Assembly: GCA_025558095.1 (NCBI GenBank)
Contig: JAIVFI010000015.1
Location: forward strand, 310,001-374,000
Source: Hyaloraphidium curvatum SAG 235-1
Taxonomy: Eukaryota > Fungi > Monoblepharomycota
Reading direction: 5' to 3'
DNA: 64,000 bases
How positions within the stretch are numbered: position 1 is the first letter of the stretch; each line of letters begins with the position of its first letter. Of the stretch, positions 3,293-11,665 are shown piece after piece. The notes beneath the pieces were generated by a model. That model was given only the letters and a program-made list of their open reading frames with translations, did not search any database and was not told where the DNA came from. Made by a program: the position numbers and the translations under genes.

Positions 3293-5859
3293 CTAGACCC
3301 ACACCTCCTCCGGCGTCCGCTGGCAGAGCCACAGCTTCACCTCGGGCGCCGCCAGCACCGCCGCATGCAGCGTCTGCCCTTCCATCACCTCCCCGCGCCC
3401 CACCGGCGACTCCAGCTCCAGGTAGAACTCGGCGTTCGGATCCCGCTCCATGAGCTTCCGCGCCACCTTCTCCCGGACCTCGGCCACGGTCGTGTTCGGG
3501 GGGAGGAAGTACCGCCGCGGTGCGGGGCTCTCGGCCTCGCGCAGGGGGGCGCTAGAGAGCTTGACGCTGGGGGAGAGGTGCACGCTGACGAACACCAGGG
3601 GCGGGCCCTCGGATGCCGCGCGGAGGGTGGGGACGGGGGTGTAAGCGGCCGAGGGCCCGTCCTCGGCCTTGACACCCACGCGGGGGGAGTTTGGCGGCTC
3701 CGCGTTGGCCGGGCTCTGCTGTACGTCCGGGGTGTGCGGTTCGATTCGGTTCGGAGCGGGTGCCGTCGCCGCGAGGGAGGGCAACGGCGCGGGGTTGGGG
3801 CTGGAAAATCCGGAGGCGGCGGGCAGCGTCCCCCCGGGCGGCTTCTTCGGCGGCCGGCCCCGCCTGTTGGGAGGCGGCACGCCGTCCACGAGGGACGCGG
3901 ACGGCGGGCCCTTTGCCGGACCACCGGCGGCCTCGGCAGCCTTCTTTGGCCTCGGGCCGCGCTTCTTCGGGGCCGGTTCCCCCTGATCCTCCTGCTTGGG
4001 CGGGTGGGGCGCCGGCGGCGGCAGCAGGGGCTTTGCCGGTTGCCCTGCCGGCGGTAGCAGCGCCTTCGCCGGATGCGGCGCCGGCGGGAGCAGCGGCTCG
4101 GTCGGTTGCGCCGCGGGCGGTTCCCGAACCGCCTCCATCCTTTGGTCGACGGGCTCCTCGGCCGGCGGCGCCGGTTCTGCCTCCGCCATCGCATGATCCC
4201 CGTGCACCTCCGCAGCTGCGGGTGCCGATCCGACCGCGGGCGCCGCATCCTGTTCCGCGGCGGCCGCCGAGCCCGTGTGGAGCGCCGCCCCGGAATCCAC
4301 CTCGGTTTCCGACACGCCGTTCACGGGGGTCTGGCTCCTGATCCGTGGCGCCCGCGAGCGGCGCCTCGGCGCTTCCGCGCTGCCAAACCCGGGACGTCAG
4401 TTCCGATCGAGGGTGAGCAGGAGCGTGGAACCAACCCCTCCTCGCCGGCGGCGTCCGCCTTCCTCTTGCGCTTCTGCGGCGCCGTCGCCGCTGCCGACGC
4501 CGGCGCGGCCTCCGCCGCGGGCCCCTCGGTCCCGGGCCCCTTGGCCAGGGCATCCTTGACGAACTTGCTCTGCTTCCTGTACCACTCCGCGTCGGGGCGC
4601 AGCGCCGTGTAGCCTTCCTCGACCTTGCTGGAGAGGTACTGGTAGAGCTCCGAATACAGCTGCTGGGCGCGTCAGCAGGGGATCACGGGGGGGCTCGTGG
4701 GGGAGGTCCCACCTCGCTGACGTCGAAGCCGCACACGCTGTGGAGCTTTGCCAGGCACACCGGGCAGAGGTGAAGTGGGACCTGGTCGTCCTGCTCGGGG
4801 CAGCGATTGAGGGCGCAGTAGTAGGCCGGGCTGTCGAGTCCGTTAGCGGGGAGCAAATCATCATCAAACGCGTCGCACGCACCACTGCGGAGGGCAGACA
4901 CGTCAGTCTCCGGATAACAATCAAGATCGAGCAAGCAACCCACTTCGTCCATGACCAGCGTCTGGCAGATGTTCCAGACGACGAGCTTGCACACGCGGCG
5001 GAACATGGACCCGTCCGGGTCCTTGGGGTCGCCCAGGCGCGCGCTCGATATCGCGCACAGGTTGCGGTGCACCTTTTTCGTCCCGCTCTCGGTCTCTGCC
5101 TCGAGGTCCGAGAAGCACCACGACGACGAGAGGTAGGCCCAGGCCACGTCCGCGCCGCGGCCCTCGTCCGCGTCCTGCCGCGCGTTCTCCTCGCCCACGG
5201 CGGTGGTCCCCGACACCTCGATGTTTGTCACGCCGATGATTGTCTTTGCGCGCGACGGGATCCACGGGCAGCGGTCCAGGCCGTCGAGCAGCGCGTCCAT
5301 GTCGTGCTCGTTGCGGGCCCACTGCACCTCGTTGTGCTTTGCCAGCAGCGCGATCGGCATGCCGCGGAAGAAGAGCACTGCAAAGTCCTTGAGGTCTGTG
5401 TGGGGGCGGCGCGTGAGCAATGTGAGGGCAGGGGAGGCGTCGGCGGGGAGCCCACCGCTCAGCAGCGTGTCCGGCACGGGGGTCTTGGGGTCCTCCCAGT
5501 TCTGCATCGGCAGCAGCAGCACGATGAAGTCGTCCATGTTCTGCGGCATGCGGCCTGCGGCGACCTCCGCGGCCCGCTTGCGCGCGTACTGCGCCATCGT
5601 CTGCAGCGCGGGCTCGCCGTCGCCCTCCTCGGGCTCCTCTGCCGCGGCCTGCTCGTCGGTCAGCACGCGCCACCGCGCGGCGCGGCGGCGGAACAGCGGC
5701 GACCGCAGCGCCGCGGCGACGGCACCGTCGGGCGACGCGCCGGCTGCACATTGTGGGGGGCGGGATCAAGGCCGGGAGGGTCAGCACACGTCAGCGCGCG
5801 CAGCCGCCGCGCCCACCGAGGACAGCATCGAGCGATACAGCGGGCGCGCCGGCCGGCAT
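3293..5859 (-). CDS. Inactive archaemetzincin (peptidase M54)-like protein with AT-hook and C-terminal beta-grasp-like domain (paralogue 1)
   Basis: Spliced product has ISSARL..RRVCKLVVWNICQTLVMDECPAYYCALN..LCPVCLAKL..GFDV..EWYR (M54 layout with HExxH replaced), then a Pro/Ala-rich linker with RRGRPPKK and a ~100-aa globular C-terminus. ATG at 5859 inferred. Confidence 0.7.
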
Positions 5860-5959
5860 CGCGATGTTGAAAGGGCGAAAGGCTGCCCAGCGGCCCAGTT
5901 GTTCTGCAATATTATAACCGTTCCCTTGCGATCCCCCAACCGGCGTGCCGCGAATCAAC

Positions 5960-7288
5960 ATGTCGCAGCCGCGGCGCAGCAAGCGGCGGCGCGTCGCAGA
6001 GGACGACGAGGTCGCAGAGGCACTCGAGTCGTCGCCCCCAGCGCCCGAGGCTGCGGAGCTCGCCGCCGACGGGGACTCCCAGCCCCAAGGTAGGTCCTTT
6101 CCGCTTCTTGCGCGAATTCCACGCGACCCGGAGCCCTGACCCCGCGATCGCCCCGCAGAGGACGCGCCCGCTGCCGAGGAGGACGATTCCGGATGGGCGC
6201 CCGCGGACGACCCATCGTTCCCCCTGGACCCCGTGTCGCACTCCTTCTCCTACTACTCGGACGTTCCCCCGCCCTGCCGCACCGAGGAGGTCACCCTGGG
6301 CGTCGACGAGGCCGGCAGGGGACCCGTGCTGGGGCCGATGGTCTACGCCTGCGCGTACATGCCGTCGTCGCGCAAGGAGGACCTCAAGGGCATCGGGTTC
6401 GCGGACTCGAAGACGCTCACGGACCCGGAGCGCGTCGCGCTCTTCAAGGAGCTGCGGGAAAAGAATGGCGACTGGATCGGCTGGGCCAACACCGTGTGCA
6501 GCCCGAAGGACATCTCAAACGCCATGCTGCAGAGGTATGCCTGACGCCTCTTTGACGCCCAATTCGCTCAAACTGGATCTCACGACCCAATCAGGTCCAA
6601 GTACAACCTGAACGCCCTTGCGCATGACACGACGATCGCCCTCATCCGCGGCGTGATCGATCGGGGTGTGCGCGTCTCCGAGGTGCGCCCGAGCCCGATC
6701 GATTCCGCGCCTTCGCCCACCAACCCCGTCACCCCAGGTCTTCATCGACACCGTCGGACCCCCAGACACATACCAGCAGAAACTCTCGCGCATCTTCCCC
6801 GGCATCTCCATCACCGTCTCCAAGAAGGCCGACTCGCTTTACCCCGTCGTGAGCGCGGCCTCCATCTGCGCCAAGGTGCCCCGCGACCGCATCCTCGCGC
6901 GCTGGTCGTTCGCCGAACCGGGTCTCGACGCGGTGGCTTCGCGCAAGTTCGGGAGCGGGTACCCGGGGGATCCCAACACGGTCGCATGGCTGGCGAGGCA
7001 CATGGACCCCGTGTTTGGGTACCCGATCCTGCTGCGGTTCAGCTGGAGCACGTGCGACAGGCTGCTGGAGGAAAAGGCGATCAACGTGGTGTGGTGCGTT
7101 GCGCGACGCCTGTTTGGCACCGTATTGGGGCTGACCGTTCCGCTAGGCCCGACTACGAAAACGCCGAAGAAGGAATCCCGTCCATCACGCAGTTCTTCCA
7201 GCCCGGAGCGGCAAAGGACAAGGTCGCAGAGCACCCCAAGTATTTCAAGGACATGAAGCTGAAGCGGGTCGAGAACCTGTTTGGCTAG
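5960..7288 (+). CDS. RNH201: Ribonuclease H2 catalytic subunit A
   Basis: LGVDEAGRGPVLGPMVY, GFADSKTL, VFIDTVG, KKADSLYPVVSAASICAKV, FGSGYPGDP, FGYPILLRFSWST. Confidence 0.95.
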
Positions 7289-7379
7289 CGGATGCTTAAC
7301 GGAAACGTCGCTGCTTATTGCGCGAGGAAGCCCATGTATTCGCGATCGTCGATACCACGCATACCAGGAACGGCTGTTG

Positions 7380-9131
7380 TCAATCGTCCTTCCCCTCGGA
7401 GATTGGCCGCGGCATCGGAGCGCGCAGCACCGCGACGATAACCACGAGCGCGCCGAGGACTACGTTGGCCCACGTCGCAAGCCTCACCAGCCGTGCTTCC
7501 TCGGGCGGGCCTCCGATCGGCACCCTGAACTCCACCGTGCCGTCCGCCAGCATCGCGGGCGGAACGTCGATCGCGGTGTACGCAAGGCCGACGAGCTTGC
7601 GGCCCGGTAAAGGCGGGCGGGCCCAGATCCCGGCCGGGTCCGAAAGAAAGAGGCCGTCCCTGCTTCCCTCCCGCACCCATTCCACTTTCTCCTGTGGCCA
7701 GGGCCCCCCGTTCGTTTCCGCCGCAGGAGCAAAGCACCCGATCCCGTCGTCGAGCACACCGTACGCCGCCGGCACCTCGACCCTCGCCCTCCCGCACGGT
7801 CTCTCCCCCCCGGGCTCTGGACCGTCCGCCGGCGCCTGGTACCGCAAATGGAACGGCACGTCCGCCCATCCCCTCGCAGCATCCACCAGGACCGACGCCC
7901 CGTTCGCACGCGCTGCAGGGGATTGCGCGGGCGCCTCGAGGTCCGGCGAGCCCCAGGGGACGTACGCGATCCCGGGGGCCGAACGCCACTGCACCTCGTA
8001 CGGGTCGGCAAAGGCGGTGTTGGTAAGGCGCAGGGCGAGGAGGATGCGGGTTAGGTTGGCGGAGGAAGCAAGGGAAGGGGACCACGAGATCCGGAACGCA
8101 GGGTGGAAGCCGGCCGAGGTTTTGAAAGATAGGGTGAGGTTCACGTCCGCAGCCCGACACAATGGGCCCAGCGTGATCGGATTGGCGGATCGATGGCCGG
8201 TGAGCATGACCTTCCCGCTTGATCCATCCGTGGCCGGCGTTGCTGCAAAGAGCCGATGCCGGCTTCCGAGGCAGGTTTGTGAAATCGCGAGCGGAGACTC
8301 CCTGTCGACGATTGCAGCTTGCAGACGCTCCGACATCTCCATCCGGGAGCCTAGGAAACGAAGAGAACCGCCCAGCGAGACCCAGCGCCCGCCGGCGAGG
8401 CAGCTTCGGACATCTTGCAGCTCAAACACGCCCTCCGCCTCCGATTCCGAGCCCAAAACCGCCCCAGCGAAAGGCTCCGAGCCAGCCAGCGGCGCGAGCG
8501 TCCGGAACGGCGGGACGCCAGAGCATGCACAAAAGGCCATGAAGATCCGGTTTCCCGAACCCTCGCCCAACGCGAGAGAGCCTCTCGTCACGTCCAAACG
8601 CCGGAGCCACAATGTCCTGTTGGTCCAACATCCGCAGCACACGTTTTGCACGCCCGCTGATTCGAGAAAGGCGCAAACCGCCCGGAGCGCTTCCGGTGCG
8701 ACCTGCCGCACCGATGCGTCCAATCCGAGCTCAACCGTGAATCCACGCGAGCCTTCCGCCCAAAACGGATCCGTAGGGAGCAGGCGGAAAGGATCCGCCA
8801 TTGTGCCGCCCCAGGAGACGGTGAGCGACGTAATTCCGGCGGGCAAGGACGCGGTCGCGTCGCCAGGGGCAAGAGAGTGTCTGGCGGCGAATCGCAGCTC
8901 AGCGCCACTTTCAAAGACCACGGCATCGTCGCTCCAGCGAATTCCGCGCTCCGGAACACGCTCGCTCGCGTCCGACGGAGTCTCCGTTCGCCAGGTCCCG
9001 GGACGCGTTTCCCTCGCGAACACGACCAGCTCCGCGCCAGAACTGTCGTGGGCAATGTCTCCGGCCACCAAAATAAAGCAACCCGCTCCGGCAAGCAGCA
9101 GCGGCATCCATGGTGGAATGCGCGCAGTCAT
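7380..9131 (-). CDS. PBN1: GPI mannosyltransferase I subunit PIG-X/Pbn1-like
   Basis: N-terminal signal peptide, F.DPYE..W, PDLEAPA, VPFHLRYQAP, VPIG followed by a C-terminal TM helix (ATWANVVLGALVVIVAVL); intronless 583-aa ORF. Confidence 0.7.
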   Translation of the reverse strand: MTARIPPWMPLLLAGAGCFILVAGDIAHDSSGAELVVFARETRPGTWRTETPSDASERVPERGIRWSDDAVVFESGAELRFAARHSLAPGDATASLPAGITSLTVSWGGTMADPFRLLPTDPFWAEGSRGFTVELGLDASVRQVAPEALRAVCAFLESAGVQNVCCGCWTNRTLWLRRLDVTRGSLALGEGSGNRIFMAFCACSGVPPFRTLAPLAGSEPFAGAVLGSESEAEGVFELQDVRSCLAGGRWVSLGGSLRFLGSRMEMSERLQAAIVDRESPLAISQTCLGSRHRLFAATPATDGSSGKVMLTGHRSANPITLGPLCRAADVNLTLSFKTSAGFHPAFRISWSPSLASSANLTRILLALRLTNTAFADPYEVQWRSAPGIAYVPWGSPDLEAPAQSPAARANGASVLVDAARGWADVPFHLRYQAPADGPEPGGERPCGRARVEVPAAYGVLDDGIGCFAPAAETNGGPWPQEKVEWVREGSRDGLFLSDPAGIWARPPLPGRKLVGLAYTAIDVPPAMLADGTVEFRVPIGGPPEEARLVRLATWANVVLGALVVIVAVLRAPMPRPISEGKDD

Positions 9132-9232
9132 TCGTGCTCGTCAATCACCAAGTCCAGGATCAATCCAATATCCTCTTCATAGACATCTTTTCGTGCCGAG
9201 ATACAAAGGATAGAGCACTTTTAAAAAGTAAA

Positions 9233-11665
9233 TCAATCCGTTTCCTCCCGCGACTCGCAGCAAATGAAGAGCGTCTTTGCCCCCGCGGGCAGCTCGTCGA
9301 TCACTTCGCCGATGGTGTCCCTCCCCTCGAATCGGAACCCCTCGTGCGCGTCGGCGACGATCGGATCCGCCGTGGAAAGGAAGAATCGCCTGTCCGGGAA
9401 GCCCTTGACGAGCCGCGGGCACACCCTCTCTAGGAATGCATCACACGATTCCTCCGAGTCCCGAGACAGGCGCATGGTCGACGTTCTGGCAGCCGCTGCG
9501 CTCTTGAGCAGCGCCTGGCACGCCACGGAAAACTTGATTCCGACCCTTTCGACGTCGGGCACTCCAGACGGCGGTGAAAGAGCCGCAATTTGCTCACAAG
9601 CAGCGTCCGGCGCGGGATCGGGCGCGGCGGGCGCCACGGGTGGCGCCGTGCCACCCTTCTCCACCGTCTCGACACTCTGATCATCCGCGGCCTGTTCGAC
9701 CTCTGGCTCGGATCGCTTGCGGAACGAAACGAGGCTGGACAGGAAGCTGCCAAACGCAGAGCCGACCTGGCGAAGGAATCCAGGGCGAGCTACCGGTCGC
9801 GCGGGATCCGGGTTGTCTCGTGGGCTCGGGTCCTGCACAGACGACACAGAGGAAGGCGGGAACGTAAAGCTGCTCTCGTTTCGGACTCCGTTCACGTCCG
9901 GTTCCGCCGCAGCCTCAGCAAACTGGCCTGCGTGCGCATCAGGTTCGACGTTGGAGCTGTCTGCCGGATCCATGTGATCCTCCAGTGTGGTTGTCTCCGG
10001 CACAGCCGCCGGTGAAGCCCTCCGCGGGCGCCGCGTGGGGGTGCGCTGCACGTAGTCCTCGTCGTCTTCGTTGTCCGAGTCGGAACTTGAGCGGTTGGAT
10101 ACGGAAGGAACGCGACCGATTCGCTGCATCCCTGTGACCTCGCCCTCGGGTGGTGCGTCATTTGCACTTGCACTTGGAGCTTCCGGAGAAGTCTGGCGCA
10201 GCGCCAAGCGGGGGAACTTGGAAGCCGAACCCCCGTTTCGTCCCTTTCGCCGAAGGCGCACCGACCAGTCTTCGTCGCTTCTGAAGGAAAAATGAGGCCG
10301 CGAATTCAAATTTCAACCGCCGCGCAAGCTCACTCTTCGCACTCGAGCTCCACCCGCTGCGAACGAGCACCCCGCTTTCTCCTGCCCAAGTTCTCCATCA
10401 GATGCTTGAGTTCGGCTGCGCTCTGCTTTTCCCGAATGTAGCCGGCGCTGGCCCTGTACCACTCGAGATCTCCCGCAAAAGCCGACAAGCCGCGATCCAC
10501 GAGATCCTGAATGTAGCTCTCGATCCCTTCGAACCACTTGAGACAATCCTCGGGCCGAGAGAAACAGCACGCCGCCAACTTCAGCAGGCAAATCGGGCAT
10601 GGGAAGAGAACGCCGTCTGATTTGGAATCGTTGTGCTCGGGTCTGTTCTTGATGCACGCAAAGGTCACGCATTCCTCGATGGCGAACTGGTGCATGATGA
10701 GCGCGACCGTGCTTCTCAGCGTCCGGCGCAGCACGGCCCCCGTAGCATCGCCGTCGAGATCACCGAATGGTGCGGTGGAAATCATACCGAGGTAACGCTT
10801 GTTGCAGCCGTTCACGGGGAAGGATTTGGCGCACGTCGTGTCGGTCCAACTGGACGTGAAGTAGGAGAAATCGATCCGCGGCTCGCCTTCCTCCGAATCG
10901 TCCAGCGCATCCCCCGATATGAGAGACTTAGTGAAGACGATGACGCTCCAGACGTGCGGGGGGAAGGTGTCCGAGACGGCGTCCAAGCCGTCGAAAAGGT
11001 CGTCCGCTTCCCATTCCGTCAGCGGGATCTGGGTCGGTGGTCTCCCCAGCGACAACACTTTCTTCGGCCGAATGATTTCGAACTCGTCCTTCGGAACGAA
11101 AGGGACGTTCGGGAACCAGCGCTGACAGAAGTGCATTACTTCCTGGACGAATTCTTGCGGCGGCGTGCCGCACTACCGAAGAAGAGTTGAGGCACAACTC
11201 GTGCTGACGAAAACAGCAACGACACACCTCGCAAACGGTGAACTCGATGACACGGTCCTTGACCGCGCGAGGCACCCGCTGGTCCAGTATCCGTTCCTCG
11301 AGCACCCGCTCGTGCTCCTCGCAAGTTTGGTTAACGATTCTCTTCTGCGGCCGTTGGACGGGGGCTTGAGCGGGAGACGGTTCTGGTGTCGGCTTGGGAG
11401 AGCTTTCAGAGGCTTCACTGGCTCGGCCGACGAAATGGCAGCTTACCAAGCTGGAGCCTGCTGCACGGGGGCCGAATGGGGCGGCGGAGGTGGGGGTCGA
11501 CGGCGATGTTGTAGAAGTAGGCGATGGAAGCTGGGAGGCTGCTCCGCGGCACAAGATTGCAGGTATGCAAAGTAGAACCGGGGGAGGCTCGTCACCTTGG
11601 CCGCGTCCGACCCTCCGGGCCGTCAACTTCTTGCGGATCGGCTGAATGGTCGTGTAAAACGGCAT
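9233..11665 (-). CDS. Inactive archaemetzincin (peptidase M54)-like protein with C-terminal beta-grasp-like domain (paralogue 2)
   Basis: Exons joined by introns at ~11173-11227 and ~10281-10333 give NQTCEEH..GMISTAPF..LRRTLRSTVALIMHQFAIEECVTFACIKN..FPCPICLLKL..LEWYR, an acidic/Pro linker and a ~105-aa globular C-terminus. 5' exons uncertain. Confidence 0.65.

Follow-up and report, generated by a model that had tools for sequence, protein, structure and literature searches.

The window analysed here is a stretch of 64,000 nucleotides (nt) from contig JAIVFI010000015.1 (assembly GCA_025558095.1, positions 310,001 to 374,000 of the forward strand) of the monoblepharomycote fungus Hyaloraphidium curvatum SAG 235-1, the DNA of which is GC-rich (60-70%), eukaryotic in character and furnished with short introns. 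Within the first 12 kb of this window, two minus-strand genes (named copy 1 and copy 2) share a layout of three parts, being a metzincin-like domain, a charged disordered linker and a C-terminal domain of approximately 100 residues. An earlier note, made from the letters of this DNA alone, had presented the pair as an undescribed family of pseudo-archaemetzincins. Both genes are present as it described them, the peptides it quoted were located where expected, and the analysis supports the reading of both as divergent offshoots of the archaemetzincin (M54) fold that are apparently dead as catalysts and in which a four-cysteine (Cys4) site has been kept.

Two linked genes with a common layout

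The published archaemetzincin motif has the form HEXXHXXGXXHCX4CXMX17CXXC (PMC3427221). With respect to this motif, the positions corresponding to the first His, the Glu, the second His, the Gly and the third His are occupied in copy 1 by W, N, Q, V and E, respectively (W-N-x-x-Q-x-x-V-x-x-E). In a 136-row alignment copy 2 reads A-L-x-x-H-x-x-A-x-x-E, with A, H and E in the His columns and with all four Cys retained. The loss of the catalytic Glu, of the three zinc-binding His in copy 1 and of two of the three in copy 2, on which the earlier note had based its proposal, can thus be read in the sequence, and of the flanking motifs it listed, IS.A, CL.KL (its LxKL) and EWYR occur in either copy. 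The CX4C...CXXC arrangement following the third-His position is found directly in copy 2 and in all members of its lineage, and in copy 1 if an exon of 2 nt is used (see below); the claimed survival of all four structural-zinc Cys is subject to the same proviso.

Copy 2 is identical to the annotated 725-residue model KAI9022509.1, which was retrieved in a large profile search; two of its introns (11227-11173 and 10333-10281) were checked, and the deposited model has two further introns upstream. Copy 1 is identical to KAI9022506.1 (also P0003) wherever their exons agree, as established by a word-index protein search, which returned this deposited model for copy 1, two orthologues for copy 2 and one orthologue for the terminal domain. 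Both models carry the database label “hypothetical protein” only, and a literature search recovered no publication dealing with a dead archaemetzincin from a eukaryote or with the present architecture, in agreement with the view that the family had not been described. A search of the H. curvatum genome returned these two copies and no further one. The searches employed single exons, read-through open reading frames (ORFs) or deposited models, and lineage A (see below) was therefore always represented in pieces, in fold predictions as well as in searches.

All copy 1 introns are of the GT..AG type, measure 52-73 nt and contain branch-like sites (CTGAC, CTAAC or CTCAC). The GC content at third codon positions (GC3) of the inferred copy 1 frame was measured from 5666 downward, i.e. 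beyond the first ~190 coding nt (5859-5667), and amounts to 0.83-0.97 per measured exon piece, the segment 4943-4831 having a value of only 0.57. The exon bearing the C-terminal M54-like helices (4436..4659) is matched in two relatives (L007 and L008) by tblastn. The intron preceding this exon ends in a tandem acceptor (cagcag, 4663-4660), either AG of which leaves the frame intact with one Gln more or less.

The raw ORFs of the two copies align with 26% identity over 200 residues (BLASTP, E=1e-6), the sole large gap coinciding with the putative intron pair 4943-4831, and a maximum-likelihood tree places copy 1 with P0011, P0089 and P0103 (lineage A) and copy 2 with P0001, P0004 and P0005 (lineage B). 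Together these lineages make up a single clade among eukaryote-type archaemetzincin (AMZ) sequences (support of 94 in the Shimodaira-Hasegawa-like approximate likelihood ratio test, SH-aLRT), while the deeper nodes are weak. The similarity and the tree together bear out the proposed paralogy.

The lineage-B protein P0001 and the lineage-A protein P0089 are encoded on a single 58-kb contig of run SRR26194948, in the same order and on the same strand as in the window, with PIG-X, RNase H2A and MYND-finger genes and two further ORFs between them. Since both lineages are linked likewise on the contig of a second organism, duplication and linkage predate the split of the two organisms. The initial reading that L001, with a MYND-finger gene at the syntenic place, contains no copy 1 orthologue was rejected, the orthologue being situated ~4 kb further along the contig. 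The same run includes a second lineage-A gene, P0103 (L007, a 5.6-kb Logan contig), which is either a further paralogue or derived from a second organism in the sample.

Synonymous sites have reached saturation between the three genes of lineage B (proportion of synonymous differences, pS, 0.72-0.84). The proportion of nonsynonymous differences (pN) is 0.18-0.26 for the dead domain, 0.26-0.34 for the terminal domain and 0.47-0.58 for the linker. The domains have a ratio of nonsynonymous to synonymous substitution rates (dN/dS) of about 0.06-0.12 wherever an estimate of dS is feasible, which shows purifying selection on copy 2, as had been anticipated.

Table 1. Features of the two genes and of the DNA between them (window coordinates unless a contig handle is given; NLS, nuclear localisation signal)
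Feature	Position	Strand	Remarks
Copy 1 gene	3293..5859	-	ATG at 5859, TAG at 3295-3293; lineage A
Copy 1 introns	5816-5744, 5455-5396, 4943-4885, 4882-4831, 4712-4660, 4435-4380	-	GT..AG
Copy 1 M54-like core exon	4944..5393	-	Ends in dead zinc-helix WNICQTLVMDE (4976-4944); aligns with copy 2 and M54 consensus
Copy 1 putative micro-exon “tg”	4883..4884	-	First two bases of first Cys4 codon; “c” from 4830
Copy 1 exon with remaining Cys4 site and CLAKL	4713..4830	-	PAYYC 4829-4815, CPVC 4766-4755
Copy 1 exon with C-terminal M54-like helices	4436..4659	-	EWYR 4587-4576; NLS-like QKRKRK 4476-4459
Copy 1 disordered Pro/Ala/basic linker	3641..4379	-	RGRP (AT-hook-like) core 3865-3842
Copy 1 C-terminal ~100-residue domain	3296..3640	-	VFVSVHL 3595-3575; KLWLCQR near end
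RNase H2 subunit A gene	6233-7290	+	Between both copies, unrelated to them
PIG-X/PBN1 gene	9131-7380	-	Pfam E=3e-12; between both copies, unrelated to them
Copy 2 gene	9233..11665	-	Annotated 725-residue KAI9022509.1; lineage B
Copy 2 M54-like domain exon	10334..11172	-	Whole pseudo-motif within one exon
Copy 2 dead zinc-helix, pseudo-motif ALIMHQFAIEEC	10704-10669	-	
Copy 2 CX4C, CVTFAC	10671-10654	-	
Copy 2 CPIC	10599-10588	-	
Copy 2 EWYR	10464-10453	-	
Copy 2 charged disordered linker	9581..10280	-	Begins with conserved acidic-Trp motif SDEDW (10279-10265)
Copy 2 C-terminal domain, predicted ubiquitin-like (beta-grasp)	9236..9580	-	
DEDW-type motif sites	10279-10265	-	Window
DEDW-type motif sites	L001:10992-11030; L002:8194-8215; L008 near 5870		Relatives

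The first zinc cysteine of copy 1

The Cys4 site of copy 1 depends on how the segment 4943-4831 is spliced. The deposited model KAI9022506.1 matches the inferred copy 1 model up to 4944, after which it removes one 113-nt intron and loses the frame; it continues with ~150 wrong-frame residues rich in Arg, Ser and Pro, misses intron 4435-4380 and is flagged as partial. Alternative readings of the segment by single introns or retention were evaluated by hand and rejected, as each of them involves a frameshift, a stop or the loss of a conserved Cys: the single 113-nt intron shifts the frame, and excision of one half alone (4943-4885 or 4882-4831) results in a frameshift or a stop. Retention of the complete segment keeps the frame and adds 38 residues, with a GC3 of 0.57 versus 0.90-0.97 in the adjoining exons. 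Only the excision of both halves preserves the frame demanded by GC3 and homology, and the two bases that it leaves between them (“tg”), joined to the following “c”, restore the codon of the invariant first Cys. The tripeptide “DEC”, which had been quoted for copy 1, is accordingly present if both adjacent introns are spliced out with the 2-nt exon left in place, and is otherwise absent.

On either side of the putative exon the splice signals are complete, the acceptor reading ..ccgcag and the donor gtgcgt, and the two intron halves (59 and 52 nt, compared to 53-73 nt in the other six introns) have complete donor, branch-like and acceptor signals. In three lineage-A relatives (L006, L007 and L008) a single phase-2 intron divides the same Cys codon as TG|C. 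Given this single intron in the relatives, the window intron 4882-4831 would be ancestral and 4943-4885 an addition two bases upstream of it. The requirement for a putative micro-exon of 2 nt to supply the first zinc Cys of copy 1 is supported by the intron positions of the relatives and by GC3, and it represents the weak point of, and counts against, the reading of copy 1 as a protein with an intact Cys4 site.

If instead the 113-nt intron is removed as a whole, copy 1 would be a recently broken pseudogene, in which the frameshift destroys the Cys4 site and everything downstream of it. This is exactly the splicing of the deposited, partial model. An exon of 2 nt is moreover extremely unusual, and the first intron begins in a manner similar to the single intron in relative L008, as though “tg” had been lost. 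Against these points, ~1.5 kb of downstream sequence has remained open in the homologous frame across two more in-frame introns, with a GC3 of 0.83-0.95; the acceptor and donor inside the segment are both intact, and halves of 59 and 52 nt fit the size range of the other introns while 113 nt lies outside it. In addition, “tg” recreates precisely the invariant Cys at the place where relatives have their TG|C intron, and a model obtained by mapping cDNA to the genome would presumably overlook an exon of 2 nt and yield just such a frameshift. Recent breakage of copy 1 is for these reasons regarded as distinctly improbable. With copy 1 read as an intact gene, “tg” becomes a well-supported candidate, predicted from genomic sequence, for a place among the shortest known exons, its evolutionary origin being clear, and the deposited model KAI9022506.1 is corrected.

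Loss of the catalytic site and fusion to a terminal domain

Both copies, and every relative with a readable motif, lack the HExxH...H site and retain the Cys4 site. The copy 2 orthologues P0001, P0004 and P0005 and the copy 1 orthologues P0011, P0089 and P0103 possess neither the first His nor the catalytic Glu, and the one His that survives in copy 2 is replaced by Ala in P0004 and P0005. Loss of the Met-turn, which had been ascribed to the pair, holds for both window copies, these having Lys and Leu in place of the Met (CIK and CAL), but does not extend to the family: the Met is kept in P0001, P0004, P0005, L006 and L008 (CLM, CVM and CAM types), Leu being present in L007. Both lineages have conserved an acidic residue immediately ahead of the first Cys (EEC, DEC, AEC or ADC).

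The zincin mechanism requires three metal ligands and a general-base Glu. As these are absent, the domain is taken to be non-catalytic and predicted not to perform zincin-type peptide hydrolysis. The proteins could still be peptidases or hydrolases if the site had been rebuilt, for instance by means of a conserved Glu or Asp at the third-ligand position; the conserved acidic residue directly before the first Cys accords with such a reconstruction, and Asp-zincins, according to PMC3890501, take Asp as their third ligand. Yet no member retains the first His or the catalytic Glu, the second His survives in only a part of the lineage-B members, others having Ala in its place, and the alignments reveal no alternative conserved triad of His, Asp or Glu, making a rebuilt site very improbable.

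The terminal ORFs had been assigned to the M54-like genes, and this assignment is sustained for copy 2 by a conserved intron together with the 725-residue model, and for copy 1 by a single reading frame in a relative. In lineage B (the window, L001 and L002), a phase-2 GT..AG intron is located at the same point; after it come an acidic-Trp motif and an open frame that leads into the conserved ~100-residue domain, and KAI9022509.1 makes use of the same junction between dead domain and linker. In lineage A, the L006 exon specifying the last M54-like helices (EWYR-type, recognised by eye) runs for 1,326 uninterrupted codons into the terminal domain (L006:6209-10186, + strand), and the fusion of these helices to the terminal domain therefore needs no assumption about splicing. 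It might be argued that the terminal domains belong to separate downstream genes, seeing that gene callers of the prokaryotic type split them off and that, in either window copy, the domains can be joined only across an intron. The continuous ORF of L006, the conservation of intron phase and position in three lineage-B genes, the lack of a start codon or a promoter-sized gap, and the deposited 725-residue model that joins both domains leave this arrangement with hardly any probability. The same architecture, for which the earlier note had advised a search of related genomes, is found in L001 and L002 for lineage B and in L006 for lineage A. A DEDW-type acidic-Trp motif comes directly after the dead domain in every lineage-B gene, as it does in a single relative from lineage A.

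For the terminal domain of copy 2, a fold predicted from four family sequences (pLDDT 80.1, a predicted score in the local distance difference test) has the order beta-beta-alpha-beta-beta-alpha-beta with a short helical insert within the first hairpin. The leading Foldseek rows of this model are all ubiquitin-fold proteins (RA, Atg8/LC3, RAWUL, PB1, MoaD and UBX; E 0.03-0.09, probability 0.84-0.99), supporting a ubiquitin-like beta-grasp fold in the modelled structure. A Ubl/PB1-like module had been suggested, of which the beta-grasp part is upheld by the copy 2 model and the PB1 part is not, since the middling structural scores do not separate the subfamilies, PB1, RA, RAWUL, FERM-F0, Atg8/12 and Ufm1 scoring alike. 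The copy 2 model has its topology in common with ubiquitin-fold interaction domains (RA, RAWUL, FERM F0/F1, PB1, Atg8/Atg12 and Ufm1) and differs from these by the lack of a Pfam family match, of a Gly-Gly end and of a subfamily-specific motif. No Pfam family, PB1, RA and RAWUL included, was significant for either terminal domain, no subfamily-specific motif was identified in them, and an ESM Atlas feature search with the copy 2 domain gave no usable match. The C-terminal ends of all members are acidic tails without Gly-Gly.

The terminal domain of copy 1 is conserved at the C-termini of lineage A (34% identity, E=4e-18, in L006; 47%, E=2e-16, in L008). Its neighbours in a protein language model are all ubiquitin-fold domains (RA, Kindlin F0 and PI3K_p85B; 0.80-0.85), Pfam provides a weak hint to Ubiquitin_At1g33420 (E=0.1), and the alignment to the copy 2 terminal domain is weak (BLASTP E=0.004; hhalign probability 4.9%). 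The language-model lead and the weak alignment hint that this domain may likewise adopt a beta-grasp fold.

The linkers match no Pfam family, AT_hook included. In copy 1 of H. curvatum QKRKRK comes right behind the dead domain, and the linker (about 250 residues, Pro/Ala-rich) contains one RGRP core flanked by basic residues without an AT_hook match in Pfam. The L006 linker exceeds 1,100 residues, in which long RG/RGG repeats take turns with tracts of poly-Glu/Asp, several K/R clusters being present as well, and the lineage-B linkers possess KRRR- and RKRK-type clusters. A linker composition of RG repeats, acidic tracts and basic clusters is typical of nuclear or nucleolar proteins. From the NLS-like clusters, RG repeats and acidic tracts a nuclear or nucleolar location is predicted as probable.

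Archaemetzincin ancestry and a possible adaptor role

Known archaemetzincins (MEROPS M54, PF07998) include human AMZ1 and AMZ2 and archaeal AmzA, with structures 2X7M, 3ZVS/4AXQ and 3LMC. When the raw ORFs and the individual members of the alignment were scanned with Pfam, PF07998 was not matched at E<=10 (threshold 24.4 bits), nor did a six-frame PF07998 search of the whole H. curvatum genome at E<=10, archaeal control genomes giving matches in the same search. The connection is made by a family profile (alignment A1), which recovered 389 proteins at E<=0.001 from a library of 1.84 billion representatives, with matches spanning roughly profile positions 115-240 (about 110-130 positions) and extending beyond the Cys motif. 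Eight of the nine non-family matches scanned (P0008-P0010, P0012, P0013, P0015, P0017 and P0024) pass the PF07998 threshold, with E values from 3e-9 to 3e-7. When the 150 matches listed and three earlier finds are taken together, 115 of the 153 proteins contain the complete HExxHxxGxxHC and most others HExxH...HC, and the near-invariant columns of the 136-row alignment consist of the three His, the four Cys, one Pro and one Lys. The predicted fold matches archaemetzincins over 157-172 residues, and the M54-like nature attributed to both genes is in this manner corroborated by profile and by fold. A pattern search of metagenome contigs with a closer alignment yielded 117 pattern matches, none of which was confirmed.

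A search of PDB sequences by phmmer and with a six-row profile returned nothing real, the only matches being chance matches to nanobodies. The best PDB scores of the family profile (E about 0.01) belong to camelid nanobodies, a framework-3 stretch resembling ...NTV.L.M..L...D.A.Y.C aligning with the region of the dead zinc-helix. The idea that a zinc-finger protein of unrelated origin resembles archaemetzincins through a Cys pattern arisen by chance, which could draw on the want of a Pfam or PDB sequence match and on these chance nanobodies, is negligible against hundreds of library-wide significant profile matches, the 8/9 scanned non-family proteins that pass PF07998 and the extent of the fold match.

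Lineages A and B would together make up a small family in eukaryotes, with archaemetzincins of the eukaryote type as its source. Its proteins would consist of a metzincin-fold domain of ~300 residues, in which hydrophobic and acidic residues have replaced the catalytic site and the CX4C...CXXC structural zinc site has been kept; a charged, disordered linker, fast in its evolution and between 200 and about 1,100 residues long, which contains NLS-like elements, RG repeats or RGRP, and acidic tracts; and a C-terminal domain of ~100 residues, ubiquitin-like in the copy 2 model and without a conjugatable Gly-Gly. This structural and evolutionary identity is held with high confidence. Considering that both folded domains are conserved, that the tether evolves freely and that no active M54 protein is detectable in the genome, a binding or adaptor role is indicated, and regulation of an active paralogue is unlikely because no canonical M54 could be detected there. 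The overall explanation that fits best, and which is judged somewhat more probable than otherwise, is that of ancient paralogues in which a dead M54 domain, a tether and a terminal domain act together as binding or adaptor proteins.

As to mechanism, which is put forward tentatively and is rather doubtful, the fold of the dead domain would be held by the Cys4 zinc site, the dead cleft would still bind an extended peptide and the ubiquitin-fold domain would dock a partner, so that the proteins may serve as substrate traps or scaffolds. The most elaborate version would be a class of nuclear or nucleolar adaptors in which the dead metzincin cleft reads extended peptides or protein termini, linked by an RG/acidic tether to a non-conjugatable ubiquitin-fold docking domain, one H. 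curvatum paralogue additionally depending for a zinc-ligand Cys on a 2-nt micro-exon created by the gain of an intron two bases upstream of the ancestral one; taken as a whole, this version is unlikely.

To our knowledge, archaemetzincins are a poorly understood protease family without an established physiological substrate. A conserved, dead eukaryotic branch with a structural zinc site and an added C-terminal domain suggests that the M54 fold serves something beyond proteolysis, and partners bound by the dead cleft could offer a handle on what active archaemetzincins recognise. The family would be a new entry in the catalogue of pseudoproteases, its reach being limited by a narrow distribution (H. 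curvatum and few relatives).

In contrast to known archaemetzincins, all members of the present family are devoid of HExxHxxGxxH, fall below the Pfam threshold, and combine a long disordered linker with a C-terminal domain of predicted ubiquitin fold in two linked paralogues, the Met-turn being lost in both window copies. Non-proteolytic ADAMs are dead metzincins that have lost zinc-binding His and Glu and whose fold remains under selection in receptors and adaptors. They belong to a different metzincin family and are extracellular membrane proteins, whereas the present proteins have no signal peptide-like start and carry linkers of nuclear type. DUF6775 consists of archaeal M54-like proteins encoded near Thi4/ThiS/ThiF genes, the fold of which lacks HExxH and has a 3Cys-1His site (PMC13325395). 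Judged by their descriptions, these archaeal, single-domain proteins, defined by gene neighbourhood, are set apart from the eukaryotic, four-Cys proteins with a fused ubiquitin-like domain described here.

Dead M54-like domains are consequently not unique to the present family, and further ones, having lost HExxH and kept the Cys4 site, occur in A0A7S1NNE9, P0046, P0049, P0066, P0079 and P0121, with architectures that differ from that of the two H. curvatum genes. P0121 is a weakly supported sister of the clade of lineages A and B (SH-aLRT 77), the other dead M54 proteins falling outside the 18-row neighbourhood that was read; P0007 is absent from the tree. The latter, the Eutreptiella gymnastica protein A0A7S1NNE9 (P0007/P0154; 1,204-1,324 residues), is composed of three tandem M54-like domains, all without HExxH and with the Cys4 site kept.

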